From Auanema rhodensis (Eukaryota; Animalia; Nematoda): 64,000 nucleotides of DNA. Of this stretch, positions 18,682 to 61,632 are shown in pieces. The position numbers were made by a program, and so were the translations under genes. The stretch covers positions 17,112,001-17,176,000 of the forward strand of contig OZ059895.1 in NCBI GenBank assembly GCA_964057225.1. The letters are read 5' to 3'. Positions within the stretch are counted from its first letter, which is position 1. Each line of letters starts with the position of its first letter. The notes below the pieces were generated by a model, which made no database searches, was not told where the DNA came from, and saw only the letters and a list, made by a program, of their open reading frames with translations.

Positions 18682-21600
18682 ATGAACAAGCCTGAACACA
18701 CATACAAGCGTGTCAGAGCGTAAAGAAATAGCAGAAATTTTGGTTTTTTATGTTTTTTTTTTTCAAATAAATTATATAATTAGAATAATTTTTATTAATT
18801 TACGAAGAAACATCATATACATCATCATCATTAAGCTTTCTCCGTTAAATCTTCCTGTTTTCTTTTTTATTACCATCATCATCATCATCATTTCATTTGA
18901 AACTAGAACTTTCCAAATCATTATGCGTAATTTCTAATTCTAATTAATTTAATTAAAATCATTAACATAACTATATCATATAAACTTCAAATTTTATGAT
19001 CTATATATGAATATTTTTATTTATTTTTCTATTTACAGTATGGATATACACAAACATCGGTCCAAAGTTGCGAAGAATGTAGCTTCCTTACCTGGTAATA
19101 TCCTCTTCTTCCTCTTCTTCTTCTCCTTCTTCTTTTTCATTTTTGATTTTTAATTTTGAAAAATTTCAAAATTCAGGATGCCGCGATCGCATGGGTGGAC
19201 CGGTCATCGTAATTGATCCACCAGTTGATAGCGTTCGTATTTCAACTCGAAGTAATATTCAAATTTCCCGAATTTTTCAAACAATTTCAAATATTTCCAG
19301 GTGCATCAACATCAGATGTTGGAGCTTCATCATTTCCATATGAAGATTTAGTATCGTTATTAGGATATTTTTCGGAAATAGCCGATAAAGAAGCAGCAAA
19401 GAAAGGCTTTGTAATCCTTGTTGATGCTCGCCGAGCTCCCCCTAAAACATTAAAAGTTATTCTTCGAGCTTGTCAGGTAAATAAAACTTGATGAAACATG
19501 ATGAAATATATGTTTAGCAAGCTCTTTATAAGAAAATAAGATTAGCATTAATAGTACAACCGGACAAATTCTTAAATCAGCAAAAGATTAATGTTGATTT
19601 GATACTCGAAGGTTACGACTTTAGGGTTAGTTGTTGTTGGTGGTGTTGGTGTTGTTGTTGTTGTTTACCTTGTTTTCCTTTTCAGACAGTACTTTTATCG
19701 GTTCATAAGCTTTCAAAGTATATTGATGTTTCTCAATTAACAGAACAACTTGGAGGAACTTTTGTTTATGAACCAGAGCAGTGGTCGAATGAACGCGAGG
19801 TTTTCAATTTTTCATATTATTATCAATTTTTTTTGGAATTTTTAGAGAATTGAGGCCGTTCTCTTAAGATTATTCAATAGAAAACAAGATTTTATAACTC
19901 CAAACTATGATTGTCTCCCGTTATCAAATAATGAAGAAGCTTTCAAAGATGCTGAAGCCTTATCTACTGAACTTACCCAGAATAGCCATAACCATGATCA
20001 TCGAGCTGCATCTGAGATTATTAAACAAGCTGTTGAAAGCGTCAAGGTTTTTCTTTTCCGTTTTCTAATGTTTTTACAAATTTTTGAACATTTTTAGTTG
20101 GCTGCTACAAGACCTGAGCGTGAAGCTATTGAGCAAAAAAAGGTAGAAGAAGCTCAAGAAAAAACAAGAATGCTGGAAGAACATGCTGAAGGAGTGAACA
20201 GGTTTAATTTAATTTTTTAAAAACTCTCTGGAATATGGAAGTTTAGATTGCTTGATTGGATTGAAGGAGCTGGTGAACGATGGTTGCTAACTTTGCATGA
20301 AATAGGAGAAAGCAAGGATGAAGCTCGCCAGCTAATGAAAGAACATCAGCAGTTAGCTGCTAAAAGCAAGGTAATATCAACATCATAAAACATAAAATCT
20401 GTGAAAAACGTCTGGAAACAATTGCTCTTTTAATGTAAATGTCCCTGAGGGCATTTTTCAAAATGTGCTGTAATATGCTAGATGTGAGGCAAATAGTAGA
20501 ACAGAGAGAGACAGAGGTGGGGAGGGGTATATGAAGGAGAAGATTGCAAAGCAGGAGAGAAGCCATAGAGGTTTAAAGAGAAATGATTCGAAAGATGGAA
20601 ATCACCTCTATATCACCCATGTTGTGTAGCCTGTTTTCTTACGTTAGCTTAACTAACTTTTCACCTTCATTTCCTCATTATCTATCTCAAATAGTATAAA
20701 GATTCCGAGGAGTTGTAGTTGTTCAATCGTTCTCTCTATCTTCTTTCTTCAAACCTCATCCATCTCTTTTCTGTAATTTCATCGTCTCCAAACGATGTTT
20801 CATTTTAAATTTCAAAGAGAATTTTCATTGTCTTTTACTTGATTTTCTTATAGTCTTTTTTTCTTTTTTGAAAAATTTCTAGAATGTTTGTCAAAAAAAC
20901 ATTCTTTTATGATGGTGGTCGTCTAAAATTACATTTTTTTATCAGAAATTCATCCATAAAACAGTTCAAACTCATTTTTGTTATTAGCAATCCTTCTTGT
21001 GGGGATCTGTCTACTATTCAATTTAATTATTTTTGGAAAAAAATATATATATATTAATATATTCTAGGAATTAATAAATACAAGTGAAGAATTGGCTGAA
21101 TTGGCTAGCCGACTGATGGCTGCTGTTCCAACACATGCCATCACCTTAGAAAAGGTTTGTCTTCCTCATTTCAAACAAATCATTATTATTATTATTATTA
21201 TTATAAATTAATACTTTGCAAATTATAAACTTAACTATGTGTTATGCAGGCTCGTGATCAAGTTCGAGTCATAGCTGAGCAGTTTGCTAATCGTGTAGAT
21301 CGTCAGATGGATATGGCCAGATGCAGCGAAGAATTCCATACACTGACAGCTGATGTAAGGTTTTATCATCGTGAACGACGATACTAAATTTCTTGGCTTA
21401 TCTTCATTCATATACTTCGTCTACAATTTCTTTTTTTCTTCATTTCTTTACGTATGGATTCAATTTCATATGTATATATATACATATACTATATGTTGTA
21501 TATGTTTTTGTGTAATAATCAGCAAATACATTCTTAACATGAGAAATAATTTATAATAAGAGATGATAATTCAATTTAGTTTTAAACAACTTAATATAGT

Positions 21601-23682
21601 AAAATATAATAATTCATAATAAATATATATATAAACTTATATATTTAGTTGACACGAAAGACGGATCTTCTTCTTGAATATCTATGTACTGATCCACGTG
21701 TTACTGACTTAGCTGCAGCTGAAGCTGAGAGAACAGCTATGGAAGAGAAAGTTGCTGTTATGGGTTAGTTCAAATAATATTTTTATTCTTATAATTATAT
21801 TTGTTTATATAATTATTCAATCAAATATTTCACGTACGTCACGTGCATTACACGTGTATAACACGTGAAGCTCATTTAGATATTTCATTTTAGTTATTAA
21901 TGCTTATAGTGTACGGTTGACTTTTTAAAATTTCTCTTCCGTCCTCTTTTTCTCATTATCTTCGTTTGTTGTCTTTTTCTAAAAGTTCTTTCTTTCATCA
22001 TTTATCTTTCACAATGTATGTACATAGACACACTTCTCTTTATTTCTTTTTCATCATCATCATCATCATTTTCTTTCAGATAAAATCTATGAAACAGTAT
22101 GTAATACCGGAGGCTCATTTATTGAAGATCTAGCGTCTTCTGAATTTAGAACAGCGGGACGAAAGGTCAGCAATTTCATTAACTATATGTTATATCTGCA
22201 TGATTAAACCTTATTGTCGGACTATTTTGTTGACAAACGTTCGTCATTACACTCTTTATCTGCATTATATTATCTTAATTTTTGAGAATATCATTTTTAT
22301 ATTGTATGAGGGCTGTACTCAATTAGATGAGAAACTAGAATACAGCATGAGTTACAGGTTGTAAGAGATTATTCTGCTGGAATAGCTCATATCAAAGATC
22401 AATTAGCATCAGCTAGAGAACGTAGACGACGATGCCTCGATTTGGTAGATGTTCGTAGGCTGAAGCTTCAACAATTCGTTCAATTATATACATGTGAGAA
22501 TGATGCAAATCAAGTAAGTTGAAGATGAAATGACATATTTCTTGAATTTTCGTTAGGAAAAACGTTGTTTTTGTTACTTTCAGGCAATTAAATGGCTTGA
22601 AGAACTACATGATACATTATTAAAAGATTATAATCAAGTTGGTTGTGATGAGAATGATCTGCAATGTTTACGTGAAGATCGTCTGAAGTTAGAAGAAACG
22701 GCTAGGGTATAATCAATATAATTTATTAATTTATTTGGTTATGTTCAGAGTACATATGAGTATGGAAAACAACTTTGCCAAGTGGGCATGGTGCTTCGTC
22801 GTTCGTTACGTTTAGATGCACAACCTCAGGTTTCTCATATTCATTCCTGCATGACTGACGCCTTTTTGTCTTTCCAGACAAGCATTACAGAAAAACTTGA
22901 ACAAACTTGGGGAAGATTATGTAGAGCATTGTCAGAGAATGAAGCTAAGCTTAACGTAACCGATGCTTTCAATTCAACTATAGTAGAGGTTTGATCTTGT
23001 AATATGACAATTTAATTATAATTTACTTCTTTAGATTAGAAGACGTATTGAAGAAATTGAAAAAAAAGCTCGTGAAAAGCTTTTACCTGGACGAAGTATT
23101 GAGACAGTGCTTGCAACAGAAAGAAGGCGTCTAAGTGAAGATATTAGAGAACTTACTCATATTAAGGATATGCTATCAACTCAAATCAATGCTAACCATA
23201 AGTATAATATATATATCTCATGATCCTTTCATTCATTTGCTTCCTTTGTAGTTCTACCGTAGAAGCTCGACAACATGCGATTGCTGGAATTCGACGAAAG
23301 GTACGATTCACTTTTCCACCAATATCACCCTCATATACTTCAGGTGGAAAATATTGAAGACAAATATCGACGAATGGAAAGCTTTTTTCTTGAATCTCCA
23401 GTAGATAGTAAGGACGAACCATACATTATGCCTCAGCCGCTAAGTATGGACAAAGATCGTAGTCATCTCGATACGTTATTGCTTGATGTCCAACGACAAC
23501 AGCAACAGCTTCAAGAAACTGCTGACGATGACCATATGGCTATTAGACAGCGTCCAACGAATTTCGCAAATTCACAAATGACTGCTGAACCATATACAGA
23601 ACGTAATCATCATATTCAGATGCGCAATGCTGCTTATGGGATGGGAAGCATTCGGCTAAGTGAAACTGAAAGCTATCTCTAA
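18682..23682 (+). CDS. Sec14/CRAL-TRIO domain plus spectrin-repeat protein (SESTD1-like), ~20 exons
   Basis: The spliced N-terminus MNKPEHTYKRVRAMDIHKHRSKVAKNVASLPGCRDRMGGPVIVID...YEDLVSLLGYF...KGFVILVDARR...LSKYIDVSQLTEQLGGTFVYEPEQW matches the Trio/Kalirin/SESTD1-type Sec14 domain. Spectrin-like repeats follow (LLDWIEGAGERWL...IGESKDEARQLMKEH; YTCENDANQAIKWLEEL). No DH/PH domain occurs before the stop at 23682. Confidence 0.88.
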
Positions 23683-28825: not shown

Positions 28826-31107
28826 CTAATATATACAAAATAATATACTTATAATAAATGATATTGTAGACCATTTTGTTATTGAGTAGCTGATGCTTGA
28901 CTGCCGTAATTCTGAAAAAGAGACAAGGTTAATGAAGCTGTGACTGCAGCTGTGGATACAGCTTTTCAAGTTCTTATATTCTAAGTTTTACAGAAACGAA
29001 AAGTCTCTAAAGGCTACGAAAATCGTTGAATTAAATGCATAATCTGTTTTCAATTTTCACATAGTAAGTTGACATGCAACATGCCTGTATTTGACAAATT
29101 TGGTTGTGGATGTGAATTGGATAGATAGTATACAGCTTGTTGATGTTCACGATGCTGATGTGGTTCGTGGTGCTGGTTATGATGATGCTGATGATGATTC
29201 TGATGATTGTCGCCCATTGTATGCTGCTTGATATGCGAATATGATGGATCTCCGGTTGTCTGAGTTTCACGCGTTGCCAAATCACGATCTGAATCCTCAT
29301 CGTCAACATTCAAATTTCCGGAACCTATAATGTGCTCTGTGCCAGTGCCAGACAGATTCGTGCGCTACGCAATCGTCTACGAGCAGGTTGTTGGCTAACA
29401 GGGAGAGATCAAAGAGAAAGTCAAATTTTCATGGAAAAGTGGAAAGGTAGTAAGTGCTTTTCATGTTTTCGCTATTTTTCAAGCTTGAGCTTCTTCAAAA
29501 AAGGTTGGAAAACGTGAAAAGAGTGCAAAACTGGTAAAGATAAAACACGAAGACCAAATATTTGTATGGAACATACCTTCAGGAATAACGTTTGTATATA
29601 TGTATTCAGGTTGAGCAGCTGAAAATGCGTTATAAGAGTTAAGATTCAAGTTCTTTGCTGTTAGTTACCTTCAAGATTGATGTCAGCAAAGTGAGCGCCA
29701 TTATCATTTTTGGCTGTACATCTGTATGTGCCGTAATCATTTCCGGTTACTTTTCGAATTTCTAAGACATGTACGCTATGATACTGCCCAGAAACAGTTT
29801 GTGACTGAAACAACGTTCATTAGCTTCGTGAGTTATAAGAAGATTGTGTTGCTCTACCGTAGCGTATTCATCAGAATCAAAGATCTGCTTGCCATCTTTT
29901 TCCCAAATAACTTCTGGTCGAGGCCAAGATTCAGCAGTACAGACAAGACGTGCCATAGATCCCGTAGATGCTTTAACGTCAGTTTCCTTTGGGATGACCA
30001 TGGGGGCAACTGAAAACACTCATGTAACTCGTTGTTTGAACATATTTGGATTATTATTGTTCGCTCGAATCTCAAGCATTTCTTTCTCATTTTCTCATCT
30101 CTACTTTGAGAGGAGTTCGTGGACATCTCTATTGGACTTGGCCAGCCACACATTGTTGGCACTCGGAATGAGGACGGCAACAGACGAAGTGTGCTTTCAC
30201 CATCGTCTTCAACAAATTTTTTCCCTCTTCTCTTCAAACATGTTGTTATACCAAACTTTGCTGGCAAGGCAGAGGCTGATGCTATTCATTGGCCCTGAAT
30301 GCTGTGGCTTTCGTCTCTTTTTCGTTTTGCGTCCGTCATGCTAAACTCACAAACAGGCATCGGAATTGAATTTGCGTTCGTTTTGAACATATTCATATGG
30401 ATAATTAGGTTTCTTACGTCCACCCTGGATCTTTGCTGAATGAGCTGGACGCATGTTAGTGTCTGTACTTATTAGGTTCACATGCATGTATTGTGCGAAT
30501 AAGAAAAGGATGGAAGGTTTGCATGAAGTTGTAACTTCTACAGCATTATGCTGCGCAAATTTAACCGAGGATGTCATTTTGAAGCGTCAAATTGGCTCAG
30601 CATATCCTATCATATACTTGACTTTCGCCCAATATTGCTTCTTTTCATGCCGCTCTTCATTTAATTTTTCTATCTCCCTCAAGCCCGCTCTCTCTCTCTC
30701 TCCTCTCTCGTTCTTTCTCTTAATCCAAAGAGAAACAAATGAAATTTGGAAACAATAGAAAACTTATGATGAACTTACATGTAACAAGTAGCTTGATAGT
30801 CCAGGACTCATCTGGAGGAATACCATTACTGGCCACGCAGACATATTCGCTCATATGCTTACGACTAACCTTTGTAAGCTGAAGATTAGGTCCATGGAAG
30901 ACACTAGCTGAAATAAATGAAAATATTAATTTGTTTCTAAACTAATAACACAAACATCCCAAAGCGTGTTCACACCAGTTTTTTCAATTTGCTCTCAAGA
31001 GGCTACGAAGCAGAATTCCCGATGAGTGTACTGTTGTTTTTTGGGTAATGACATGCTACCCTCTTATAACAATACTTTTTTAACCTTATAAGCACTACTT
31101 ACACTAA

Positions 31108-31142
<35 letters not shown>

Positions 31143-34100
31143 TCTCTCTCTCACTCTTTCTCATCTTTTACACTTAGATTATAGTCAATTGCATATTTTG
31201 ATCCAGTCAGTTAGTCAGAAGAGATAGTCTCTTGAGTACATATGATGTTGTCATAATAATTGGCTTTCTGCCAATTTAGAGTGTTCTTTACTTAATTACA
31301 TGAAGTGTGGATGGTTTTCATCTAACATATGGTCAAGATTATCGTTGTCAGAGGTTACATAGACAGACGAGGGTCATCTCTGTCAGGCTGTCGCATACAA
31401 GAAATCCGGTAGATGTTACGTTAGCATGATAGATCATAGATAGAGCTGAGAGAGAGCTAGAGATAGCAGATGAATGAGATAGACAATCCCTCCTCTTATG
31501 CTATCCACTTCTTCAGTCAATCAGTCAGATACATTGCTAGACGGCGTCATGTGGATACAATGTTGGTTTTACCCACGCTTAATCCACTGCTGTCGTGATT
31601 TTTCTCTTCTGCTTATAGTGCAGCCAGATATATCTATGTACTGCTTGGGATTCTCTGAGAGCTAGCTCCAGCTACATACAGCAAGTACTGCTGTTACTGC
31701 AAGAGATTTCCTGAATAATGTGTTGTTGGTTTTGGTCAATGCAGAATAATGTGAGTCCAAGAAAGAAAGAGAGAGAGAGAGAGATACTTAACATTGAGTT
31801 GACGACAGATTGAAAGACGAACAGCCCAGAAATGCTGGCATCTAGTCGGATGACTTGGCCATGACTTGACTTGACCCTGAATGAAAAGAGGCCACTACTA
31901 CACATGAAATCAAGAGCACAATGAACTACGATGATCATGAGTCTAAGCGTTATGAGACTGAATTACAGCATGGGAATGCTTATATGCTGCTTCTGAAGAG
32001 CTAATGATTCGTATCCAAGATGTATATACGATGTAAATGAGAAAATATGTTGTAAATCTTGTAAATAGATGAAGATAATATTATTTAAAAGATTAGCCAA
32101 CCATTGATGTAACTTCTAACAAGCTTATGCCTTGATCTTCTTTCATTTTTTCAAACTGATTATGCTCGTAGCCCCCTTCTACCCTAGTCTGACCACTGTC
32201 TCAATAACTAACCTCCGAATCCAGTTGCACCATTGTAGCGGATTATCTGACGATCTTGTCGTCTCCAGATGACTGTTGGTGCTGGATTACCTTCAGCTTT
32301 ACAACTCAACGTCACATTATGTCCCTCTCGTACTTCAACAGCAGACGGTGTACTGCGCGAAACGCTCGGTGGTACTGAAATAAAAGAAAAATAGATTAAA
32401 GAAGCAACTTGCTGCTAAAAACTTGAAAGATAAAACTTTGTAAAAACATCTTTTTTTTTGATGGTCAGCTTGAAAAGAGAAAGCTGTTTTCTGCTGTATG
32501 TAGTGCGTGAGCAAGCATCAATGCAATGCATTGTCTGATGGTCTAGATGAGTGTCATCGTTGTTGATCACACACCTCAAAGCCTTATTTAGTGTTCGGAT
32601 AACTTGGTGTTGTTAGTGTAGTTCCCTAGTCAACCAACAATGTGTTAAATACTTTCAATACAGTAGTGTATTGTGACATGCTGATAGAGAAAGTGTGAGA
32701 GGCTTATTGCGCGCTGGCTCAGGAGCCACCTAGCTGACAGCCAGATCACAAACAAACTTGTTGCAGCTTTTATTCATTTCAAAAGATTTTTTTTCTTTTT
32801 CACAGCTCGCCGACAACGTTTGCTAGTCAGTTGAATTGAAATAAAGAATTTAACTTTAAAAATATCCAAAAAGTAAATGATATTACTGAGTGAAAGTTCG
32901 TTTTGAGATCAAAAATGAAAAATATGTTTTGAAAATGTTTTTTCAACCAAAAAATATCAGTCGAATTTAAGTTATGACAGTTTGTTTGGCTTTGGCTTGA
33001 TAGATAAGTTCTTTTTCTTCCTTTTGGATGACGTTCACTACTCCCTCCCACCACCCATCTCTCTTTTCCATTTTAACTTAAATATCTCTTTCATATTTTA
33101 TATAGAAGTTGAAGAAAATTGGGATACTGAATCTAAATGCCTAGCCACTCTGCCAAAGAAATGAAGATGATGTTAAACATGCTGGAAAAACATTCAAGTT
33201 GAAAAAGAGAGCCCCCAACCCAAAAGACTTGCTCTCGACTGCTTTCCCCTACCTCAGTCGTCTTACTTTCTTTTTCTATCTATCTTGAACACTCTCTATC
33301 ACAATGTTCTTTGCCTTTTCTACCATTTTAGACCCAAAATATCCGAGGAGCATCTGACGCAACTAACAACTGTGTGCAGATGAGTGGGTGAATGTAGATG
33401 AATCGGACAATATGTTCAAGCATGTATCCATATTAGCCCTATATCAACGACATTGACCGACCTGGATGTATGTTGATTAGGTCAACGAATGTTTTCTTCT
33501 TCTTCTGTCACATCAAGAAGTCATGCTCCCACCTGTTACGGCAATTAATTAGGTGTCAGATGATGCCTGATGCTTGATGATGATGACGGCAATGGCAATT
33601 GAGTGAGAGAAAGATCTAAGAACACAGACAGACATGAATCCATTTATGGCCGATATCTCTTCTGAGAAGAAGAAGATGCCGCCAAAACCATTTCCGTTTA
33701 TTCCTGATCCATCACACATCGTCAACATGACAGACGTTCGAGTTTTCAGCAGGCTTTGAGCTTCAAATGGGATAACTGGACAACATGCTACTGAGCATAT
33801 GAATCAAAGAGAATATAGATTAAGAAAGAATAATTTTTTAATTGCTGTTAAAGCGGGTAATTAATGCTTTAATGGATTCTAATAGGTGGTTTTCTAATAG
33901 CATTGCTGTATCTCAAAGAGACCAGCAGCGACTTCAAGACGGATTTCACAGCCGCCGGCATGCTACACGCTTGATTCGCTTAGCTTTAGCCACATTCGTA
34001 AAGCCTTTATTCATTATGATACAGACGGAAATTGATTTCGACCCCCAAGAACTATTTTATTGGAAAAGGGGAAAAACAGAAAACAGAAAGAAGCAGAGGA

Positions 34101-37100
34101 AAAGAGGGAAAAAGAGAGGAAGAGAGAGAGAGGAGTGAGAGGCCAAACTAGCGGATAAAAAGCGGGGTGGGAAGAGGAATGAAAGGAAGTGGCTCGTTGG
34201 CTGGACGAGTTAATGAATTTGAAAATTGAAAATTTGGGTTTTTTCGGCTTAGATTTATATCCTCTGAGAATCATTAGCATACTGATGAAGTAGAAAGAAT
34301 ACCCTTAGAAAAATCTCTTTTTTCCTTTCCCTTCTTCAGATCTAATGAGACATGATGTCTGACTACAATTCTCTCAGTTACTGCTGGCCATCTGTAGTCA
34401 TTTCGTCAGTCAATATGATAGATACAGGAATATCTTCATATATCTTTTGAAAAGAAAACCGGCAAAAGAAGTTAACGGAAGTGTAAAGGAAGATGCTTCT
34501 GACAGCCATCGCTGACCATCCCTCCACACCCCGAAGATGAGCACAAAGCAGACTGTAGCTTTCTCATTAAGCTTATGCTTTATCCTCTTTCACTATGCAC
34601 TTGGATAGATTATTTCGATGTTGATTAGTAGAGTTTCGTACTTACCTCGTATATCAAGCTCTCCTGTCAACGACATAATTGGATCTGTATTTATTTGGCA
34701 CGAATAGTTCCCACGATCCTTCTCCTGAAAAAAGATCTCAAATTGCATGAGAGAATAAGCTATAGATATTATATGTATATATATATATATTAGATAGAAA
34801 TAGAAAAAATGCGGAAAAATGCTTGAAATAAGGTTGGATGAGTTGAAAAAGATGTTGATGAATATACAAATGAAGTTATGAGTCAACAAAAAGAAAACAG
34901 AAAAAAGAAAAAGGAAAATAAAGATGAGTTACTTCATTTCTCTCCCTCTCTTTGTTTCTCTCTCTCTCTCTCTTTCTATATTACCTGAGCATTCTTGATA
35001 GTTAGTACCCATTCGTTATTCATAGGTCCCATCCGTGGCTTCAGCTCATACTTGTCGCGTTGACGAAATATCTGTAAAAAAACACAAAAACATCTAATTT
35101 TTCTCAGAAAATACATTGTAAACGATGGGAAGATGTATAAGAGGAGACTCTTTTCAATTTTTTTGTCTTTTGCTTCTGTTTTAACATTGACAACTATAGC
35201 AGGAGCAGCAGTAGCACGTGTATCATCATCAACATCATATACAGAGAGATGATAGATGTACATGCCTAGTTGACTACTTTGAATGAGAAGTAAGTAAAGG
35301 GGGGGGGAGTAGAAGGGAAAGCGAGAGTTTGGAAGGTTTATGTATGTAATTGAAATTCAGTTTATGAATCGTTAGATGGAAATATAGAATAAAGTGATTA
35401 TATATTTCAAAGCATATAATACAACTTGAGCTTTATTCTTCAACTTCTTCATCATTCATTAGATTGAAAGGCAACTTTTGTTACAACTTTAATGAGCTCA
35501 TTGAATAGATCATGATTTGCATTCGTTTTTTGTTCATTTTTCCATTCAAATTTCTACTTTCCTCCCTCGCATGGCTTTCAGATTGATGCAATTAAATTGG
35601 ACAATTTGATAGTTTTAATGGGGATGATGGTTTTAGATCTATAAACTCTTATATACTTCTTATAATTAATTGAAAAATAATAAATTAGACGAAATATTTG
35701 GTGAAAAAACATGTTTTTCAAAGGTCAAAATGGCGGCAAAAAAAAACTATAAGATGATGATGTTTGAAGTACTCTATACTACTTACCCTCTCATCAAATG
35801 AGATAAGTCTAGGAGGTTTACCAGCACGTACAAAAGCCACCTAAAACAAATAATAAATCATTTCTCGAAAAGAAATTGAAAAGATATGATTTTTCATACC
35901 ATATGACGTCCTAAGTTATCAACTTTACATGTAAAATCCACATCCTGGCCTAATAAGGCAATTGCATTGCCCATGGAATCCGATGATATAATTGGCGGAG
36001 CTTGTCGTGTACATACTGAAACAAGTGCCTTAAGATCTGATTTATCTATCTCTCTCTATCTTTCTCTATCTTTCTCTTTTTGTTTTTTTGTTTGTTTTTT
36101 CCTCAAACATTTAGAATTGATGATGGAGAGATTGGCTAACTCTTGATTCTGAAAGAGAGAGGAAGGAACGAAAAGAAGCATACGAGTGCGAGAGAAGGGA
36201 TTGCTTTCAGTTTTTTACAACCAAAACCGTTTTCACCTTTTAGACGGTTCCATTTTCTGAACTTATCCCTCTATATCCCTCTTCCTCTTTCCCCATCTCT
36301 CTTACTCCTTCTCTCTCCCTCTCTCTCTCTCTTATTATATCATCTTTTGCGTGAAAAGCATGACTTTTTTCTGCAGTTATAAGTGCGGAAAAAGTGTTTT
36401 TTATTCAAAAAATGGTAATATATGGTCAGAGACCATGTTGCGGACGACAAGCTATTCGCTTTTCCATTTCCGGCACATCTGAGCTCTCATAGGGCTCTAT
36501 GAACCTCGTGTAACAATGACGAAACTCGCCGTATTTGTCAACTCGAAATGAGGAAAAGCAAATCTACGAGAAGTCGAGACTTACCGTTAAACAATTGACA
36601 AAGAATTGTTGGAAACATAAGTATAGAATATTCATTTGACATTATAAAATATTCAAATAACAAGTGATAACAATGATTCTGATGATGATGATGATGATGT
36701 ATGCTATTATGCTTAATAGACTATCAATGATAGACTTTGAGCTTGTTATGCAATAGTGATGATGATGATGTAGTAGTAGTAGTAGTAGTAGTAGTATCAA
36801 ACAAGTAAAAGACTTGGAAAAGCAGTAGCAGCCTTTTTTCAAATATTCTGTCCAAGTTAAAGGCAAGAAGAACAAGAAATAAATAGATTGAAGTGATGCA
36901 ATATGATCAGCTGTTATAGATTATGATACTGCTGGCTTGTACTAGGCTATTGCTTTCAATCTGTGATATGTACAAGACTTGAAATGATGCTGCTAGTGCT
37001 GCTGCTTCTGCTGCTTCTGATGATGATGATGATGATGATGATGTTGAGAATGCGAGATGATCTGGTGACTGGAGTGATTGCAACATCATCAAACATCCCA

Positions 37101-37390
37101 TGAGGATATGATCTCATATGCTTCACAATCATCATCAATTCTTTTTGATTTTAAAATAATTTTATGAAATTCTGACATACGAAGGATGACATTACAAATA
37201 TAAAAGCTTTCAAGCCTATTTTTGAACGATGTTATACAGAAATTAATGAAAATGAATTGAATAAATGAAAAATTTAGATTATATAGTTAAATATTACATA
37301 TAACTAACCTGAAGTAATAGTTAGCAATAATACAAAAATATTTAGAATATTAGGACTACCAAATAGATTATAAGAGAACATCTCTGACAT
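28826..37390 (-). CDS. rig-5: RIG-5, three-Ig-domain neuronal adhesion protein of the DIP/lachesin/IgLON group, predicted GPI-anchored
   Basis: Spliced exons give a signal peptide followed by APPIISSDSMGNAIALLGQDVDFTCKVDNLGRHMVAFVRAGKPPRLISFDERIFRQRDKYELKPR...EWVLTIKNAQEKDRGNYSCQINTDP..., VPPSVSRSTPSAVEVREGHNVTLSCKAEGNPAPTVIWRRQDRQIIRYNGATGFGASVFHGP...KVSRKHMSEYVCVASNGIPPDESW..., MARLVCTAESWPRPEV...TVSGQYHSVHVLEIR. I recognise these from recall as closely matching C. elegans RIG-5. The C-terminal tail is hydrophobic. Confidence 0.92.
31088..31152. repeat. (CT)n microsatellite in a rig-5 intron
   Basis: CT run. Confidence 0.9.
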
Positions 37391-37760
37391 TTCTGGACAC
37401 AAACCACTAAGTCGTCTGTCCCCCAGAGTTTAGGTGCCGAGCAGGAGAGGAAGAGAGAAAAGGGCGGAGCTTACGCCCTACATATTGGTCGTTGACGAAA
37501 GCACTTCAATCTTGAACACTAGTACTCGCATCAAGACTTAATTCATTGAAAAAAAAACTAAATGAGCAATCAAAATGATTTTTCATAATTTTTGTTGAAA
37601 ACAATGGGAATTTCTAAATTTAAAGTTTATTTTAAAAATCTTAAAATAATCAATAAAGAACTGTTAGTAGAGCAAAAAAAATAAAAATTTTTAAAGAATA
37701 CTTTGTAGATCATTGAAAACAAGTAATCTTCGATTTTCTGTTTTTTTTTCGTTCAAAATG

Positions 37761-37785
37761 AGTGAAACTCATACAAAATACGTTT
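37761..37785 (+). promoter_or_regulatory. PSE-like upstream motif of C/D RNA copy 1
   Basis: AGTGAAACTCATACAAAATACGTTT. A related motif, AGTTAAACCCATACAAGGTACGTTT, sits at identical 38-nt spacing upstream of the otherwise diverged copy 2. Confidence 0.65.
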
Positions 37786-37823
37786 TTCTTCCAATATGAA
37801 CAAGAAATAAAAGTTTTGGATTT

Positions 37824-37951
37824 GTCTTCAGTCAGGATAATTCTGATTTGCAAAGCTGTCAATGATGAGGAACAGAGATGATTCCATGTGAGTTAGAGCT
37901 AGCGATACTGCGGGACCGCAACTCCTGTCAGCTTATCATAGCTGAGGCAGC
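37824..37951 (+). ncRNA. Box C/D snoRNA with 5' extension, U8/CeR-2(CeN21)-like, copy 1
   Basis: C box ATGATGA (37862), D box CTGA (37942), terminal stem GCTGTC/GGCAGC and a ~35-nt 5' extension CTTCAGT...TCTGATTTGCAA. Internal GTGAGTTA and GGACCGCAACTCCTG resemble U8/CeR-2 motifs (from recall). Homology between paralogs stops sharply at the 5' end. Confidence 0.75.
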
Positions 37952-38089
37952 AACTTCCTTTAATCGAATAAAAACTTTTCTGGGTTATTAAGTGTTTCAA
38001 AAACAAACGGACCTTACAAGATAGGAAATGGTAATAAGAAATTTGAAGAAATCAGTTTTCTCCGGGAAAAGAGAAATTAATTGAAATGT

Positions 38090-38161
38090 GGGGATATAGC
38101 TCAGTGGTAGAGCGCTCCCTTAGCATGGGAGAGGGCTGGGGTTCAATTCCCCATATCTCCA
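38090..38161 (+). tRNA. tRNA-Ala (AGC)
   Basis: GGGGATATAGCTCAGTGGTAGAGCGCTCCCTTAGCATGGGAGAGGGCTGGGGTTCAATTCCCCATATCTCCA: cloverleaf, AGC anticodon, G3:U70, A and B boxes, downstream TTTT. Confidence 0.97.
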
Positions 38162-38241
38162 GAATTCTTTTGCTTTCCACCCCGATAAAGCTTTAAGTCT
38201 GATTTTCTTATTCTTTGAAACACGTGTGCAAACTTGACGCG

Positions 38242-39180
38242 TGAACTGTATGTTGACTGATTAGCATAATTCACGTGTACTTTCTACTCACGTCACACAC
38301 CTCGTGTTTGCTATTTTTCGAACTCTTATCCACGTGTGTGGTTGCATTTCTTCATTTTGAACATTATTTTTAATAATTTTATTCTTTTTTCAGTTACTTT
38401 CAATTTAAAAAAAATAAAACAAAGTCTTCTCAGCAAGTATGAGTAGGTTCATCAAGAATTTCCTAATTTTTTTTATTTTTATCCCGTTTCACCTCAACTA
38501 GCCAGTTCACAACACTGAAAGTTACAATTTTTCAAAAATTTAGTTGAACTATTGAAATAATCATTACTTCTGTTTAATTTATGATAAAACTTTCTACTAT
38601 TATATGATATTACTTCCTCTTTTCTCTTTCTTTCAAATGTACTACGCTACTTATTTCATCGTTATGATGATTAGAATGATTTATCTTTGATCAAAGAAAG
38701 TTCAAAGTTCTCATAACGGTTAAACGGCAAACGAATACAAAATCATGATATAGAAAGCTCAAATTTGGTTGGAAAATTAAAAAAAAAATTTCACCAGAAA
38801 AGATAAAATAATAAAATTCTTTTGTATAGGTTTATGCACAAGAGCTGTAGTGGAGCTGGTAGACCGTAGCTAGTTCAACTAAATTTTTGAAAAATTGTAA
38901 CTTTCAGTGTTGTGAACTGGCTAGTTGAGGTGAAACGGGATAAAAATAAAAAAAATTAGGAAATTCTTGATGAACCTACTCATACTTGCTGAGAAGACTT
39001 TGTTTTATTTTTTTTAAATTGAAAGTAACTGAAAAAAGAATAAAATTATTAAAAATAATGTTCAAAATGAAGAAATGCAACCACACACGTGGATAAGAGT
39101 TCGAAAAATAACAAACACGAGGTGTGTGACGTGAGTAGAAAGTACACGTGAATTATGCTAATCATTCAAAACACAGTTCA
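38242..39180. repeat. Internal palindrome: ~310-bp arms (38242-38551 / 38871-39180) with a 319-bp spacer
   Basis: Arms are reverse complements with about 4 mismatches; no target-site duplication is evident. Confidence 0.9.
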
Positions 39181-39952
39181 TAAATTACATTGATTTCTTC
39201 AATTTTCTTATTATCAACACCCATCTCTAATAGTTCATTTGCTTTGAAAACACAAAGTAAGCTATAAGTTGGTGAAAGAATAGATTTGTTGAAAAGAAAA
39301 CATGGTAAAGAGACATAGATTCATATATAATTTCAATGAAAAGTTCAAGTTAAAAAGAAAATTACATAGTTTTTCGTGAGACTATGAAAAGGAGGTTGAG
39401 GCTATGAATTGGATAACAATCGCATCTTCTTACATACAAATATATAATAATATTTGAATAATTATTTAGATTCATATAAATGAGTAAATAAAATTAAAAT
39501 AAAGTATTTTTTATTTAATTTTAAAAAAGATTAGTGAATACAATTGAATCAAAGTCATGATGATTATCAGTGGAGCGCGACTTATTAAGTATTGTTTTCT
39601 GTTATAATTTCACTAAAAAGTATAATTAACTGAAATAAACTAAGTATTACAAAACTTGAAAATATGAAATCGACCCTGTAGAACTAGAAAAAGTGACTGA
39701 AATTTGAAAATATCATCATATCAACGAGATATGACACCTTGAACATAGCCCCCTTAGTGAACATGTATTGCCTTCTGGTTTATATGATATAACGACTTTT
39801 TACTTTATCATATAGTTACCTTTTATATATAAATGTGGTCAATAGCCGAAAGGATAAGATGACAGACTGGCACTCAAACAGTCCAAGATCGAGTCCCACA
39901 GGTTGCTGATCAGAACATAAGGTAAGACAGAAGTTATAGAAGCAGTACACCG

Positions 39953-41432
39953 GTACCAGGACACCCGAGGACCAGGACACCCGAGGACCAGGACCAGGAC
40001 ACCCGAGGACCAAGAGCAGGAGGACCAGGACCCCCGAGGACCAAGAGCAGGAGGACCAGGACCCCCGAGGAGCAGGAGGACCAGGACCCCCGAGGACCAG
40101 GAGGACCAGGACCCCCGAGGACCAGGAGGACCAGGACCCCCGAGGACCAGGACCCCCGAGGACCAGGAGCAGGAGGACCAGGTCCAGGACCCCCGAGGAC
40201 CAGGACCCCCGAGGACCAGGAGCAGGAGGACCAGGAGCAGGAGGACCAGGACTAGGACCCCCGAGGACCAGGACCAGGACCTCCGAGGACCAGGACCAGA
40301 ACCCCCGAGGACCAGGACCTCCGAGGACCAGGACCAGAACCCCCGAGGACCAGGAGCAGGAGGACCAGGACCAGGACCCCCGAGGACCAGGAGCAGGAGG
40401 ACCAGGACCAGGACCTCCGAGGACCAGAACCCCCGAGGACCAGGAGGAGCGAGGACCAGGAGCAGGAGGTGACGACGGACCTGAGTACTTTTCAAAGTTC
40501 AAATAAATTTTTTGATGAGGAGAACCTCTGGGGGGGGACCAGTACCCCCGAGGACCATGACCAGTACCCCCGAGGACCATGACCAGTACCCCCGAGGACT
40601 AGTACCCCCGAGGACCAGGACCAGTACCCCCGAGGACCAGGACCAGTACCCCCGAGGACTAGTACCCCCGAGGACCAGGACCAGAACCCCCGAGGACCAG
40701 GACCAGAACCCCCGAGGACCAGTACCCCCGAGGACCAGGACCAGAACCCCGAGGACCAGTACCCCCGAGGACCAGGAGCAGGAGGACCAGGACCAGAACC
40801 CCCGAGGACCAGAACCCCGAGGACCAGTACCCCCGAGGACCAGGAGCAGGAGGACCAGGACCAGAACCCCCGAGGACCAGTACCCCCGAGGACCAGGAGC
40901 AGGAGGACCAGGAGCAGGAGGACCAGGACCAGAACCCCCGAGGACTAGTACCCCCGAGGACCAGGACCAGTACCCCCGAGGACTAGTACCCCCGAGGACC
41001 AGGACCAGAACCCCGAGGACCAGTACCCCCGAGGACCAGGACCAGAACCCCGAGGACCAGTACCCCCGAGGACCAGGAGCAGGAGGACCAGGACCAGAAC
41101 CCGCGAGGACCAGTACCCCCGAGGACCAGGAGCAGGAGGACCAGGACCAGTACCCCCGAGGACCAGGACCAGTACCCCCGAGGACCAGGACCAGAACCCC
41201 CGAGGACCAGTACACCCGAGGACCAGTACCCCCGAGGACCAGGACCAGAACCCCCGAGGACCAGTACACCCGAGGACCAGTACCCCCGAGGACCAGGACC
41301 AGGAGCAGGAGGTGACGGCGGACCTGAGTACTTTTCAATGTTCAAATAAATTTTTTGATGAGGAGAACCTCTGAGAACCAGGGGGACCTCCCATGACACC
41401 TGGAGCAGCTGGAGGTGGCGGAACCGAGGACC
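39953..41432. repeat. GC-rich compound minisatellite (16-nt core GGACCAG(G/T/A)ACCCCCGA plus GGACCA/GGAGCA modules) in two sub-arrays separated by a duplicated AT-rich spacer
   Basis: Sub-arrays at ~39953-40480 and ~40530-41323. The spacer CTGAGTACTTTTCAA(A/T)GTTCAAATAAATTTTTTGATGAGGAGAACCTCTG occurs at ~40480 and ~41324. Confidence 0.93.
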
Positions 41433-41794
41433 TTATTTGTTATTTGTGAACTGGCTAGTTGAGGTGAAACGGGATAAAAATAAAAAAAATTAGGAAATTC
41501 TTGATGAACCTACTCATACTTGCTGAGAAGACTTTGTTTTATTTTTTTTAAATTGAAAGTAACTGAAAAAAGAATAAAATTATTAAAAATAATGTTCAAA
41601 ATGAAGAAATGCAACCACACACGTGGATAAGAGTTCGAAAAATAGCAAACACGAGGTGTGTGACGTGAGTAGAAAGTACACGTGAATTATGCTAATCAGT
41701 CAACATACAGTTCACGCGTCAAGTTTGCACACGTGTTTCAAAGAATAAGAAAATCAGACTTAAAGCTTTATCGGGGTTGAAAGCAAAAGAATTC

Positions 41795-41866
41795 TGGAGA
41801 TATGGGGAATTGAACCCCAGCCCTCTCCCATGCTAAGGGAGCGCTCTACCACTGAGCTATATCCCC
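41795..41866 (-). tRNA. tRNA-Ala (AGC)
   Basis: Identical reverse complement of 38090-38161. Confidence 0.97.
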
Positions 41867-42004
41867 ACATTTCAATTAATTTCTCTTTTCCCGGAGAAAA
41901 CTGATTTCTTCAAATTTCTTATTACCATTTCCTATCTTGTAAGGTCCGTTTGTTTTTGAAACACTTAATAACCCAGAAAAGTTTTTATTCGATTAAAGGA
42001 AGTT

Positions 42005-42132
42005 GCTGCCTCAGCTATGATAAGCTGACAGGAGTTGCGGTCCCGCAGTATCGCTAGCTCTAACTCACATGGAATCATCTCTGTTCCTCATCACTGACAG
42101 CTTTGCAAATCAGAATTATCCTGACTGAAGAC
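42005..42132 (-). ncRNA. Box C/D snoRNA, U8/CeR-2-like, copy 2
   Basis: 128-nt copy; the one difference seen is C box GTGATGA instead of ATGATGA, which still fits RTGATGA. Confidence 0.75.
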
Positions 42133-42170
42133 ATTGATTTGACACCTTTTCAGTTTAGATATTTTATTTG

Positions 42171-42195
42171 AAACGTACCTTGTATGGGTTTAACT
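42171..42195 (-). promoter_or_regulatory. PSE-like upstream motif of C/D RNA copy 2
   Basis: AGTTAAACCCATACAAGGTACGTTT (minus strand), 38 nt upstream of the RNA 5' end. Confidence 0.65.
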
Positions 42196-42237
42196 AAAAA
42201 AATGAAAAACATCAAATCGTCAAAAGTTAAAAAGTTC

Positions 42238-42309
42238 TGGAGATATGGGGAATTGAACCCCAGCCCTCTCCCATGCTAAGGGAGCGCTCTACCACTGAGC
42301 TATATCCCC
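42238..42309 (-). tRNA. tRNA-Ala (AGC)
   Basis: Identical third copy with diverged flanks. Confidence 0.97.
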
Positions 42310-42456
42310 ACATTATTCCAGATTTTCCAGTTTATCTTTCCCCGGAGAAAACTGATTTCTTCAAATTTCTTATTATCATCCGAATATCTCGAATGGTCCG
42401 CTTGTTATGGAAACACTTAATAACCCAGAAAAGTTCTTATTCGATTAAAGGAAGTT

Positions 42457-42584
42457 GCTGCCTCAGCTATGATAAGCTGACAGGAGTTGCGGTCCCGCAG
42501 TATCGCTAGCTCTAACTCACATGGAATCATCTCTGTTCCTCATCATTGACAGCTTTGCAAATCAGAATTATCCTGACTGAAGAC
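42457..42584 (-). ncRNA. Box C/D snoRNA, U8/CeR-2-like, copy 3
   Basis: Identical to copy 1; PSE-like motif at 42623-42647. Confidence 0.75.
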
Positions 42585-44429
42585 AAATCCAAAACTTTTA
42601 TTTCTTGTTCATATTGGAAGAAAAACGTATTTTGTATGAGTTTCACTCATTTTGAACGAAAAAAAAACAGAAAATCGAAGATTACTTGTTTTCAATGATC
42701 TACAAAGTATTCTTTAAAAATTTTTATTTTTTTTGCTCTACTAACAGTTCTTTATTGATTATTTTAAGATTTTTAAAAATAGGTCTATGGTTTTACAAAA
42801 AGTTCACATCTTTGAAAATATTTTAACTAAAATTGTAATTCTAAACTTCACTATTTATCACATTTAGCATTTTTCTGGTCTTACAATGCTTGATCTATTA
42901 ATGAAAAATTATGCTTATTCGGAAGTTAATGACGAGAATGTGAGCCGGACCTCAGCGGTTGGCTAACTCCAAGCGAAGAATAATGAGATGCTTTCGTTAG
43001 AAGTTGTTCTCGAATTCAAGAAGAGATGCACCAAGCCTCTTAGCCGTGAAAATGCCATCTCATGTCGTTTTCATCTGATTCTCCATTGCATATTCTCTTG
43101 TTTTCTATCATTGATCGTTTGAAGAATTTTTCTAGTTAATAGCAATTTAGAGTAGATAGATTTCATTTTCGGACGTATTTAAGAGTTATATGAACATCAA
43201 TTTTTATATTTTTCTTCTGTTTTATACTAATTAATCATTTTTTAATGTAAAAATTTAATAAAATATACGTAATTTTACGTATTCTTTTAGACTTTGAGGT
43301 ACGAACACTGCTCTTTTGGATATTTTGCTGATTATATTTTATGAAGCTTAACCAATGACTGATACATGTTTAACGAATGAACAAAGGCATTAATACATGT
43401 ATATCTACATATACATGTGAACTTAACAAGTTGAATAAGCAGTAGCAACATCACTAGTCGTTTGCTTATTCATGCTACATCAAGATGTATCTAATTGTAA
43501 TCTCAATAGCAACCAATGCTGTTCAAAATGTCTGAAATGCAAGCATTCGTTCAGGTTGACAGGTTTAAGCTTTTCCTTCTGCCTAATTGGGCAGATACCT
43601 ATAACCTATATTAATATATATTTAACTATATATGTATATTTTATATAAGAATTAATATTGATTTTTTGACTTTTTTTAACACAAAAAAACGAAAAAAAAA
43701 AAAGCTCACGTGATTATAGAAACCTGACTCACACATTAAATTTAATTGAAAAATCATGTATGATCGATCATCCTTTTTCTTTTTTTTTTTGCCAAATTTC
43801 GCTCATATCTTTTCATTCTCATTATTTCCTTTTTATTTTCATTTCCGTTTTCTTCCTCTCCTCCCTTCCCCTCTCTTTCACTTTCTCCCTCTCTATTTTT
43901 TATTCTTTCAGTCTTCCCTCTCTTTCTATCTCTTTCTCTCTTAAAGATTTTCATCACATTTCTATAATTTTATTGAAATTTATAGTTTTAAACAAGATTT
44001 TTTCGATTTTCTTTGTAAAAAAAAAATTAAAATTTCACTTTGCATCTCGTACATGCTCATATATGCTCCGCTTCATGCTTCATCTTTCTATGAATTTTTT
44101 TTTTCACTATGCTAATCTATCATAACTAAACTTAATGCTGTGTTGAAAGTGTCACGAGACATTCTCTGCCATCAGAGTATTTTCCATGTCAATGAGGGGG
44201 ATACTGAGCAGCAGCAGAAGAAGATCTACTAAGTATACCCTTATGAACAAAAAATAGTTTTTTTTATCTTATTGGCTTATTAAAAGAATGTTTTTAGGCA
44301 TTTTTCTTCATTAATTTTCTTATAGAATCTTGCTTAATGCCTATTTCTCTTTCTCTATCCTATCCTTCTCTGTATCTCTCTATCTCTTTCATTAATTCTC
44401 TCTCTATATCTATTTTTTCTCTTTCTCTC

Positions 44430-46414: not shown

Positions 46415-46698
46415 CTCCCTCTATCAATCTCTCTCTCGTTTTTCTTCTCTTCCTTAATTTCTGCTCTTTCTCAACCTCTCTCTCTCTCTTTCTCCTTCTC
46501 TTGCCTAATCTTTCTCTCTCTTTCTCAATCTCCCCTTACCTTGTTATATCAATCTCATGCTTCTCTTATATTTCTCAATTCCTTTAAAAAAAATATTATC
46601 TTTCTTATAAGAACACATTTTCTCAAACGAATAATTCTGTTATCTGGTTTTTTTTTGTTAAAAAATGAATAAACTTTGCTCTTTGTCCTTATTTACAG

Positions 46699-49600
46699 CT
46701 AATCCGGCTATTTTTAGGTGATCACCTCATACCAATATCTTGCTTTCATTCAGAAGCAAGAAAATCTACTTCGAAGCACATATCTTATAGCATACCAGCT
46801 TCCAACTTGGCGCGATCAGCCTGTTTTCGGAATAAATCTACTGAAGGTACACCTTCACGAAGCTCAACGACGGCTGGAAGTCAGAGAGTGGCTGCTGGTG
46901 CCGATGTCAGAACGAGGTGCGAAGAGAGTGGACTGTCATCAGAAGCAGAAACTGCAGTAGTCACAGATTTAGCAAAACTAGGCAACAGGAGAGCAATTGA
47001 AGTTATTAGGAAACAGGAGACTGACGATGATGTCACTGAATTGATGAAAGACATCAAAGCAGCTGTATGGTCGTTACCGGATTGCGGCATCATATCAACA
47101 AATTTAGGTGATAATGATAATAATTCGAAGAAAGAAGATGAAGATGTAAGCAAATCACTCGAAAACACAGAGAATCTAACGATTCTGGAGCAAAAAATGA
47201 CGGAACGCTTCAAATCAATCGAAAACATGTGCTATGCACCTGCTAATCAATCCGATGAAGATGTGCAACAATCATCATCCAATACCGAAGATGATGAAGC
47301 TAGTGAAGCTCAGGACACTATTGGACCGTTCCCATGTCCCATCTGGAGTCGAAATGATGCCGTCGTCGTCAACAATCGTCGCTTGTTTTCGTCGATCACT
47401 TTCTCCTCCAGACTCCGCCCCCATCGTCAGATAGCAGCAGCGGGACGTACGAACGGCCTGCCGGCTGACAGCCACAACAGCACTAGTAGTAGCTTGTTTT
47501 GCGGTTCGTCGTTACTTTCGTCTTCTCTTCCAACTTCACTTTTCTCTGCGTTTCCTAGCTTTTCGTTGTCAACCATAGTCACATCGTTGTCGATATCGAC
47601 TGTTTCTGGTACTTCGACATCAGTGTCAACTAGTAACAGTCTTTCGTCATCGTTACCTTCGTCAACGTCATCTATATCCACATCTATATCATCGCCGTTG
47701 ACATCATCCGTGTCCCAGACACCAAAAGCATCTTCATCTGATTCTTCTTCTGTTCATTCCATTAACAATCTCTCATCTTCGCCTTCTGAATCCGAAAAGC
47801 TAATTACCGAAAAAACGAATACAGATGCATCGGATACAGAAGTAAAACCTCTTATCGACAATTCTAGGCACTTAAATCGAGCTGAATCACGGCTCGCTCC
47901 TTCTCTTCCAAAGCTTTCACCTCCCACAACGTCTAACGTTGGAATTTCTCAGAATTCCTCAAATTCTTCTTTAATAACTACGTCTAACGTGTCCAAATCC
48001 TCATTCTTAGGAACCAGAAGCATTGTATCAGAATCCTCCACCATGCTCGAATGTGCAACTAACTATCGCGATCGAAAAAAGTCTTTCGGTGAGTTTGTTT
48101 TTCCATTCAATTTTCCGTTCAAACTGTCTATTATATTCATAAACATGTTGCTGTTAGCTACTTGACGGCCAAAAACTATCTAATCATTGAATATCAGCTG
48201 CATTCTATTCCTTAATATGAAGTTTTCAACTTGAAGCATAGGCTTAAAGTTGTTTTTCCATTCAAAAAACAGGTCAAATTCCTTGAAACTCGTGCGTATG
48301 TGTATAACATTAACTGTTCATCGCTTGTTATTCCTACAACTTCAATCGATTGTTACATACTGTACCTACTTGATGTTTAAGCTTTAATTGATTTTTTATC
48401 TATTTTTGGGGTTCAAATATTAAAATCTGCTTACAACCAACTGTCCAACTCATTTATAATCCTGTTATGTTTCATTCTTCATATTGTACTTCACGTGAAA
48501 CATTACGTGAACCTTTCGAAATATCACGTGCCTTCTCTCTCTTTCTCTCTCTCTCTCTCTCCCCCTCTCTCTCTTTCTCAACCATTGTTGCCAAACTGAG
48601 CACCGTGAATGAAAAAAAAAGGAAAAATAGAAACATAATAGTATGTAAAAGAAAGAAAATGAAGACGAGAGTTCCCTTGTCTCATGTCTGGTAGGTGAGA
48701 AGGATGAAGAGACACAGCGGGTACAAGAGAACTAGAGAGATGGAGCAGGAATAGATGAAGGGTTTCCCTCGTGCTATTGCTGCAGAAAGGCTTGATGGCT
48801 CTTGTTTTGACGGTGGGTTTCTAGACTTCTGAAGCTGAAACACAGTGGGCCTTCATGGGCTTGTTTTCAATATATTTCTGCTCAAAGCCAATCGATTCCC
48901 TCTTTTCCTTTTTGCTTTTCCTTTTGGGTCTTTCTCTCTCTCCCTGTCCCTCTCTTCCTCTCTCCTGTTCGCACTCAATTTTCTCTCTATGTTTTCCCTC
49001 TCCACTTGGTTGGAACTATCTTATGTGTTTATCTGTCTGCCCTTTCCTCACCACAGCAATCTCTAATTCTCTTCAAAGATCCTGATGGTGGGTCTGTTTT
49101 CCATGTTCATCGTCGTCGACGTCGTGGTTGTCGTCGATTTCATCGTCGGTGAAGAGAACGAGGACGATGTCGAATACAACTATAATGAAAATTGAAAAAA
49201 TGAGTGTGAAAACGACAGAAAGATAAGAGAATGAGAAGTAGGTGTGGACGATGTTGTAAAGGATAGACGACAAATGGAATGGCGAAGATGTGGAGACACT
49301 TGGAGAACGGGAAAATCTGTTTTTGCTTCATCCTCATCCCATACGTTGAATGTTGAGTTTTGATCGTCTTCTGCTTACTCATACCCCCTTCGTGAGCAAT
49401 TCGTTTTCATTCTATCCATCAGCCCTCTTCTTCTAGCTTCTCATTTAGAGGATTGTAGAAGAAGAAGGAGGAGGGAGGCTGTTAGGCAGTCGTCGTCATT
49501 GTAGTCATCGTCATGGTTCAACAATAACAAATCGTGTAAGGCTATAATAGAAAAATGCGTTTTTCGGGATGTTTTGGGAGGGTGGGTGGTAGTTTGATGA

Positions 49601-60993: not shown

Positions 60994-61632
60994 TTAGAAG
61001 CAGCCAAAGACACCACATTCAGATGCCATAGCCATCACTTGTTTAAGAGCTCTTCGGCTGAAGAAGTCAGACAAGGAATAGGCTTTGAAAAATGCTTTCT
61101 TGTTCGTCTTACAGACTTTACAGAATCCACAGCTAGTATAGCAACTTTCATGAGACTTGAATGCTGATTCCTCGAGGTTCTCACAACCTATTTTTGATTT
61201 TTTCTAAAATATGATAATGGAATTATGTAAATTGATATTATATACATTAAGCAGTTGATCCAGATAGCGAATCAAACAATTTGATGTACAATCGATGAAT
61301 TTTTGACCAACAGCATCAAATTGTTTCCGGGTTTCTAATTCGATTTAATTTTAAAATGGCATGCAAACATGATAATCCATTAATACCTGGGTTATTGAAG
61401 TTGTTACAATTGCGTTTTCCATAAAACATCAGATAACCCTTTGGTCCGCATTTTGTTTGACTCTCGAATTTATCGTAGCTGTCGCATACCTGAATGATAT
61501 TTCGTAGTTTTTGGATGATTTCAACAGAAAAAAAGGAATATTGGAAGATTATTGAACTTAGACTAATACCTTTGCTGATTCCGCGAAATACAGAATTGAG
61601 AGAATAATGAAAATACTGGAAGTTTTTGTCAT
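60994..61632 (-). CDS. Secreted cysteine-rich stanniocalcin-like protein, 4 exons (~154 aa)
   Basis: Signal peptide MTKTSSIFIILSILYFAESAK, then VCDSYDKFESQTKCGPKGYLMFYGKRNCNNFNNPETRKQFDAVGQKFIDCTSNCLIRYL...GCENLEESAFKSHESCYTSCGFCKVCKTN. The CG..GY...YG...C..F / FD..G..FI / AF.SH..CY...G.C pattern is typical of invertebrate and fungal stanniocalcin-like proteins. Confidence 0.8.

Follow-up and report, generated by a model that had tools for sequence, protein, structure and literature searches.

We analysed a 64,000-nt stretch of the genome of the nematode Auanema rhodensis (GenBank assembly GCA_964057225.1, contig OZ059895.1, positions 17,112,001 to 17,176,000, forward strand), here called the window. 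An initial annotation, made from the letters alone, had described in it a two-gene RNA cassette present three times, once on the plus strand and twice on the minus strand. The layout was found as described (Table 1). Each unit consisted of a 25-nt motif resembling a proximal sequence element (PSE), 38 nt of intervening DNA, a 128-nt box C/D RNA, a spacer of about 140 nt and a tRNA-Ala(AGC) gene. The plus-strand unit was named copy A, the minus-strand unit at 41.8–42.2 kb copy B, and the minus-strand unit at 42.2–42.6 kb copy C. The 128-nt RNAs started at 37824 (+), 42132 (−) and 42584 (−). The fixed spacing of the motif also proved correct, as it lay exactly 38 nt upstream of the RNA in three of three copies. 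The RNA and the tRNA were co-oriented, their distance across the copies was 138–147 nt, and 42 nt separated the end of the copy C tRNA from the copy B motif. The three tRNA-Ala(AGC) genes, detected with ARAGORN and Rfam, were all identical. Elsewhere in the window, the 25-nt motif had no match with three or fewer mismatches, and shuffled sequences were expected to give none. The count of three copies held for the window and failed for the genome, where read depth pointed to more.

Table 1. Features of the cassette copies and of the duplicated DNA around them (positions in the window).
Feature	Position	Strand	Remarks
PSE-like 25-nt motif, copy A	37761..37785	+	At −63 to −39; position as CeR-2 PSE
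U8/CeR-2-like box C/D RNA, copy A, 128 nt	37824..37951	+	Rfam U8 29.6 bits; folds; CeR-2 primer match
RNA-to-tRNA spacer, copy A, B-type	37952..38089	+	TTTT at 37976 and 38056
tRNA-Ala(AGC), copy A	38090..38161	+	Oligo-T at 38168
Inverted duplication, left arm	37630..38512	+	C-type before crossover (37863–37971), B-type beyond; borders found in independent DNA runs
Second inverted copy of downstream flank (38871–39180) and decayed spacer relic	38871..39270	−	
tRNA-Ala(AGC), copy B	41795..41866	−	
U8/CeR-2-like RNA, copy B, box C GUGAUGA	42005..42132	−	Rfam U8 27.1 bits
PSE-like motif, copy B	42171..42195	−	21/25 identical to A and C
tRNA-Ala(AGC), copy C	42238..42309	−	
U8/CeR-2-like RNA, copy C	42457..42584	−	Rfam U8 29.6 bits
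PSE-like motif, copy C	42623..42647	−	

The 128-nt RNA had been assigned to the U8/CeR-2 type from its motifs, and the comparisons supported this assignment. At relaxed thresholds, U8/SNORD118 (RF00096) was the best Rfam family. The RNA was collinear with this model over positions 1–135, with a 5′ arm, box C, an LSm-like element, a GCAAC loop and box D. The 5′ arm (37824–37849) was identical to the U8 consensus at 19 of 26 positions. Box C (RUGAUGA, 37862–37868) and box D (CUGA, 37942–37945) were enclosed by a terminal stem of 6 bp (37855–37860/37946–37951), which bears out the RNA's length of 128 nt. The single base that varied among the three RNAs (A or G at 37862) was the R of box C, in keeping with the consensus RTGATGA. 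The LSm-like element GUGAGUUAG at 37888–37896 and the GCAAC loop at about 37918–37922 followed each other in the U8 order. The former aligned with the consensus UGAUUA with one base extra; CeR-2 likewise retains just six of the eight bases of the LSm octamer (PMC2943600). When the RNA was aligned with the published CeR-2 primer (PMC2943600), 13 of 17 bases at the 5′ end were identical, including all of the first 9. The comparison with CeR-2 covered its two ends, and at the 3′ end the agreement was confined to box D.

Several observations count against the assignment. An Rfam scan at the gathering threshold, which is 41 bits for U8, recovered the tRNAs alone and not the RNA; against U8, copies A and C scored 29.6 bits and copy B 27.1 bits. 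The E-value was 0.0011 on 346 nt and 0.2–0.7 for the three copies in a scan of the whole window; these E-values count 4227 families, though U8 had been named ahead of the test. Compared with the U8 model, the RNA lacked 17 positions that make up the second 5′ stem-loop, had an imperfect LSm element, and carried a G before box D where the consensus has a U. The 5′ arm was also paired with a conserved stretch at the 5′ end of 28S, for which the AB28 primer site served in place of A. rhodensis rRNA. The duplex, a 6-bp core plus 2 bp, was weak at −7.6 kcal/mol, and 759 of 5000 shuffles (15%) were as good, whereas CeR-2 at the same site reached −11.2 kcal/mol with 204 of 5000 shuffles as good. The folding z-score of the RNA was about 0, a value that carries no information in the case of a C/D RNA bound by proteins. 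The low Rfam score, the weak 28S duplex and a CeR-2 comparison made at the ends would also suit some other capped box C/D RNA with no more than a likeness to U8, either a methylation guide or an orphan. We consider such an identity very improbable in view of a U8 match that runs through the whole model, a first 9 nt equal to that of CeR-2, and a 38-nt extension 5′ of box C that is U8-like and not guide-like. These resemblances indicate that the 128-nt RNA is very probably the orthologue of U8 and CeR-2.

The 25-nt motif occupied −63 to −39 relative to the RNA start, and a PSE-like element of CeR-2 has been placed at −32 to −69 (PMC2943600). By this agreement in position, the motif may be the PSE of A. 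rhodensis.

Comparison of the copies revealed a recombinant. Copy A was 100% identical to copy C over 37630–37971, and over 37823–38512 it had 99.7% identity to copy B, with two bases differing. Copy A is a C/B chimera, with the crossover between 37863 and 37971. An assembly artefact was ruled out, as a contig of the independent sequencing run X6 that started in the unique left flank entered the repeat for 30 nt with zero differences, and the unique right flank of copy A was likewise covered by reads. Because copy A is a recombinant, it offers no independent evidence of selection and only the comparison of B with C is informative; it also means that exchange within the unit does occur. The use of three independent copies as evidence for selection was thereby ruled out.

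Between copies B and C, 124 of 125 positions were identical in the RNA, 72 of 72 in the tRNA, and 127 of 139, with five gaps in addition, in the RNA-to-tRNA spacer (91%). The motif was identical at 21 of 25 positions, the 38 nt behind it at 14 of 38, the 40 nt before it at 11 of 40, and the 40 nt behind the tRNA at 20 of 40. Conservation was higher in the RNA than in the spacer (Fisher p = 0.003) and higher in the motif (21/25) than in its flanks (25/78; p = 6 × 10−6, with borders chosen post hoc). The diverged spacers of the initial annotation were thus found around the motif and behind the tRNA, where identity was near-random (28–50%), but not between the RNA and the tRNA. Its claim of selection on the RNA, the tRNA and the motif kept its conservation pattern and lost its three-copy basis, as one pair carries all the evidence. 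On this one pair, the three parts are likely under selection. The two tiers of conservation agree with a recent exchange among the copies that has its anchor in the two identical genes; a constrained spacer is the alternative.

Reads were mapped onto positions 37300–38860 of the window, leaving out the long GC repeat. At least half of the B/C stretch was present in eight runs labelled as two organisms, and 47% of it was present under a third label. Contig depth over the RNA was about 11–14 times that of the single-copy flank; depth is not copy number, as the tool warns, and the value suggests, roughly, about a dozen cassette RNA copies in the genome. On the tRNA (38095–38147), summed contig depth exceeded the depth of the unique flanks by thousands of times, as would be expected if tRNA-Ala were massively amplified. 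Apart from a paralogue, RNA variants in the reads were nearly nil (37862, plus one at 37870), and spacer variants were frequent. The paralogue, which lies elsewhere in the genome, was present at single-copy depth in runs X1 and X6. It had diverged from the cassette RNA by 10 substitutions and two gaps over 37831–37927, and its 3′ end was unseen. All 10 substitutions fell within 37861–37892 and spared box C.

Three forms in which the two genes were uncoupled were found. The X6 contig of the paralogue continued for 924 more letters in the 3′ direction with no tRNA joint listed, an indirect observation in that the contig sequence itself was unread. In a contig of X1, the upstream flank (37692) was joined to tRNA-Ala (38091) via 29 other letters, and both the motif and the small nucleolar RNA (snoRNA) were absent. 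The third form was the spacer relic inside the window (39191–39253), which matched the 3′ half of the spacer with 75% identity and had lost both the RNA and the tRNA.

We propose that each unit probably holds two separately transcribed genes, a U8/CeR-2 orthologue and an ordinary tRNA-Ala, which were joined once and then amplified together. By analogy with CeR-2 and U8, RNA polymerase II (Pol II), directed by the PSE-like motif, would transcribe the 128-nt RNA, which would receive a trimethylguanosine (TMG) cap. Box C/D proteins would bind it at the kink-turn. It would be needed for the cleavage of large-subunit pre-rRNA into 5.8S and 26S/28S, and not as a methylation guide. The tRNA-Ala(AGC) gene would be transcribed by RNA polymerase III (Pol III) from its own internal promoter and end at its own oligo-T terminator. 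The two neighbours would have come together once, after which tandem duplication, unequal crossover and inverted duplication amplified both, while selection maintained the two RNAs and the motif. The similarity of the spacers would then have arisen mainly because exchange between copies anchors in the two identical genes. The functional coupling of snoRNA and tRNA that the initial annotation had raised was not borne out: forms of each gene without the other occur in the reads, no transcript across the spacer was seen, and the two genes appear to be functionally independent.

The genomic background is compatible with this proposal. A preprint on the genome of A. rhodense reports 19,554 annotated tRNA genes, describes 5S, tRNA and U2 genes in tandem arrays, and finds that 61% of the DNA is eliminated in the soma; snoRNAs are unmentioned there (10.64898/2026.08.27.747507). 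Since the window is rich in genes, the cassette probably escapes this elimination. Small-RNA families of animals are commonly linked in a passive, hitch-hiking way (PMC3464664).

Other observations weigh against two genes that merely travel together. A co-oriented tRNA within 200 nt is expected by chance at about 1%, even at uniform tRNA density. The spacer was conserved far above the other flanks, which function could equally explain. In the single RNA run, zero contigs fell on the snoRNA or the spacer, and just the tRNA-Ala of another locus was represented. The first two of these observations would favour a unit selected as a pair, in which the RNA is U8 and TFIIIB/TFIIIC bound to the downstream tRNA gene stops Pol II read-through; in the tandem part, the complex on the tRNA would also shield the PSE of the next unit. 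The geometry fits, with a putative Pol II snoRNA gene 138–147 nt directly upstream of an intact tRNA and the copy C tRNA only 42 nt before the copy B motif. In yeast, SNR53 relies for its termination on TFIIIB at the adjacent tG(GCC)E gene, and 132 of 272 tRNA genes present a TFIIIB block to Pol II (PMC5052057). As in the SNR53-tG(GCC)E pair, the cassette has a snoRNA gene of the Pol II type next to a tRNA gene. Unlike SNR53, for which the dependence was established by depletion and deletion and acts alongside Nrd1-Nab3-Sen1 (PMC5052057), the cassette is known by its geometry, and it is amplified. The map of C. elegans cer-2a names two protein genes alone as neighbours (PMC2943600), whereas each copy in the window has a tRNA-Ala downstream. 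A paralogue lacking a tRNA joint and a tRNA lacking the snoRNA argue against an obligatory link, and linkage of this kind is commonly passive in animals. Small nuclear RNA (snRNA)-type genes of animals end by Integrator cleavage, so no roadblock is needed for a mature 3′ end. We therefore regard a roadblock function of the tRNA as unlikely, although it is the strongest competitor. The broader idea that the amplified snRNA-type genes of this nematode are built as selected modules of a Pol II and a Pol III gene, with the Pol III complex ending or insulating Pol II transcription, is somewhat more doubtful still.

The initial annotation had also raised co-transcription, in which a single transcript, the snoRNA followed by the tRNA, would be cut apart by RNase P. 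The two genes lie on the same strand with a short, conserved spacer, and tRNA-snoRNA dicistrons, which likewise hold a tRNA or tRNA-like sequence and a snoRNA close together on one strand, occur in plants, yeasts and C. elegans, the latter at the UM2 loci (PMC2527325). In the known cases, however, the tRNA comes first and serves an uncapped snoRNA as its Pol III promoter (PMC2527325), whereas in the cassette the snoRNA comes first, has its own PSE-like motif and is separated from the tRNA by T-runs. The TTTT runs in the spacer, which are shared by copy C, would halt Pol III, which is unlikely to pass them. The tRNA gene itself is intact, with an internal promoter of its own. Zero RNA contigs crossed the spacer, a weak point in that the same run was also without the snoRNA. 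A dicistron of the UM2 type was ruled out by the snoRNA-first order, by the terminators between the genes and by the lack of a tRNA upstream of copies A and C; upstream of copy B lies the copy C tRNA, but an oligo-T terminator and the motif of copy B itself intervene. We give co-transcription by any route very little chance. Least probable of all is that the cassette represents duplicated DNA of a selfish or inert nature, short interspersed nuclear element (SINE)-like or pseudogenic, with the diverged single-copy paralogue as the working U8 gene: the 5-kb complex in which it lies is rearranged and includes a minisatellite and a decayed relic, no expression was seen in the RNA run and such a paralogue exists, but the RNA and the motif are conserved above the adjacent DNA, the sole change in the RNA preserves box C, and neither a poly(A) tail nor a tRNA-first SINE layout was seen.

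The surroundings of the cassette were also examined. Exons neighbouring it had 60–89% identity to strongylid proteins, which points to a nematode, probably of clade V. The neighbouring gene was an immunoglobulin (Ig)-domain gene, presumably of the rig-5/lachesin type. Its first coding exon, signal-peptide-like, lies at 37309–37422 (−), and an RNA contig splices 37309 to 36015 with GT..AG borders. Further exons, searched one by one, lie near 29765–35842. The 5′ end of this gene and the copy A motif are head to head, about 340 nt apart. Within the flanks retrieved, the loci around homologues of the Ig gene (Ancylostoma, Ostertagia and three Logan contigs) contained no U8 and no tRNA, which has little bearing on the linkage. 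A scan of metagenome contigs with a U8/CeR-2 pattern gave 12 matches, which were taken as chance and rejected; none of the 12 had a U8 match or a tRNA, and the majority represented one bacterial-looking coding sequence.

In the middle of the inverted complex lies a GC-rich minisatellite (39940–41440) with units of 6–25 nt and an internal duplication (39955–40530 versus 40808–41373, 82%). Read on the minus strand, it gives stretches rich in Pro and Gly that are broken by frameshifts and stops and may be the decayed remnant of a proline-rich gene. A homologue search with a 452-aa open reading frame near the cassette found none. A Ser-rich open frame of 498 codons (46669–48162, +) had no Pfam match, and the first 200 residues from its first start codon had no homologue. 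Farther away, a hairpin at 13204–13275 (−; z −5.7) matched the mir-133 family below the gathering score (47.9 bits, E = 8 × 10−8) and mir-245 weakly; it is a probable gene of the mir-245/mir-133 family. Exons of a SESTD1-like spectrin-repeat gene were found at 20221–23679 (+). A stanniocalcin-like exon (E = 1 × 10−4) lies at 60997–61203 (−), and an exon with a weak match to the exosome RRP4/CSL4 N-terminus at 62903–63091 (−).

Among known systems, the RNA is most directly comparable with C. elegans CeR-2/CeN21 (cer-2a and cer-2b), with which it shares the 5′ end, a length of about 125–128 nt, boxes C and D, and an upstream element at the same distance. Both are multicopy, with 2–6 copies in Caenorhabditis species and about a dozen in A. 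rhodensis. CeR-2 carries a TMG cap and is located in the nucleolus, and its mutant accumulates a large-subunit precursor; no homologue was found beyond Caenorhabditis (Hokii et al., PMC2943600). Within the literature searched, the A. rhodensis RNA is apparently the first CeR-2 relative reported outside that genus. In a 2022 review, U8 is still treated as vertebrate-only, and CeR-2 figures as a putative candidate. The A. rhodensis RNA matches the U8 model as well as the 5′ end of CeR-2, which makes the identity of CeR-2 with U8 more credible, and it adds a sequence overlooked by standard Rfam annotation. Other invertebrate members may already be present in the Rfam U8 family, so the identity of the RNA would be modest news.

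The unit as a whole resembles the linked repeats 5S-U1, 5S-U2, 5S-tRNA and U2-U5, in which Pol II and Pol III small-RNA genes share one homogenised unit (PMC3464664). Our literature search found no report of U8/CeR-2 as a partner in such repeats. An amplified U8-then-tRNA unit is an arrangement for which no report was found, and its precedents in kind are clear. Because coupled and uncoupled copies share one genome, the cassette offers a clean way to ask, in an animal, whether a Pol II small-RNA gene is terminated by the tRNA gene downstream of it. Should the link be passive, as we think probable, the cassette would simply join the many hitch-hiking units of this genome. If selected modules were real, it would exemplify, in an animal, roadblock termination that is under selection, with the Pol III complex making tandem amplification workable.

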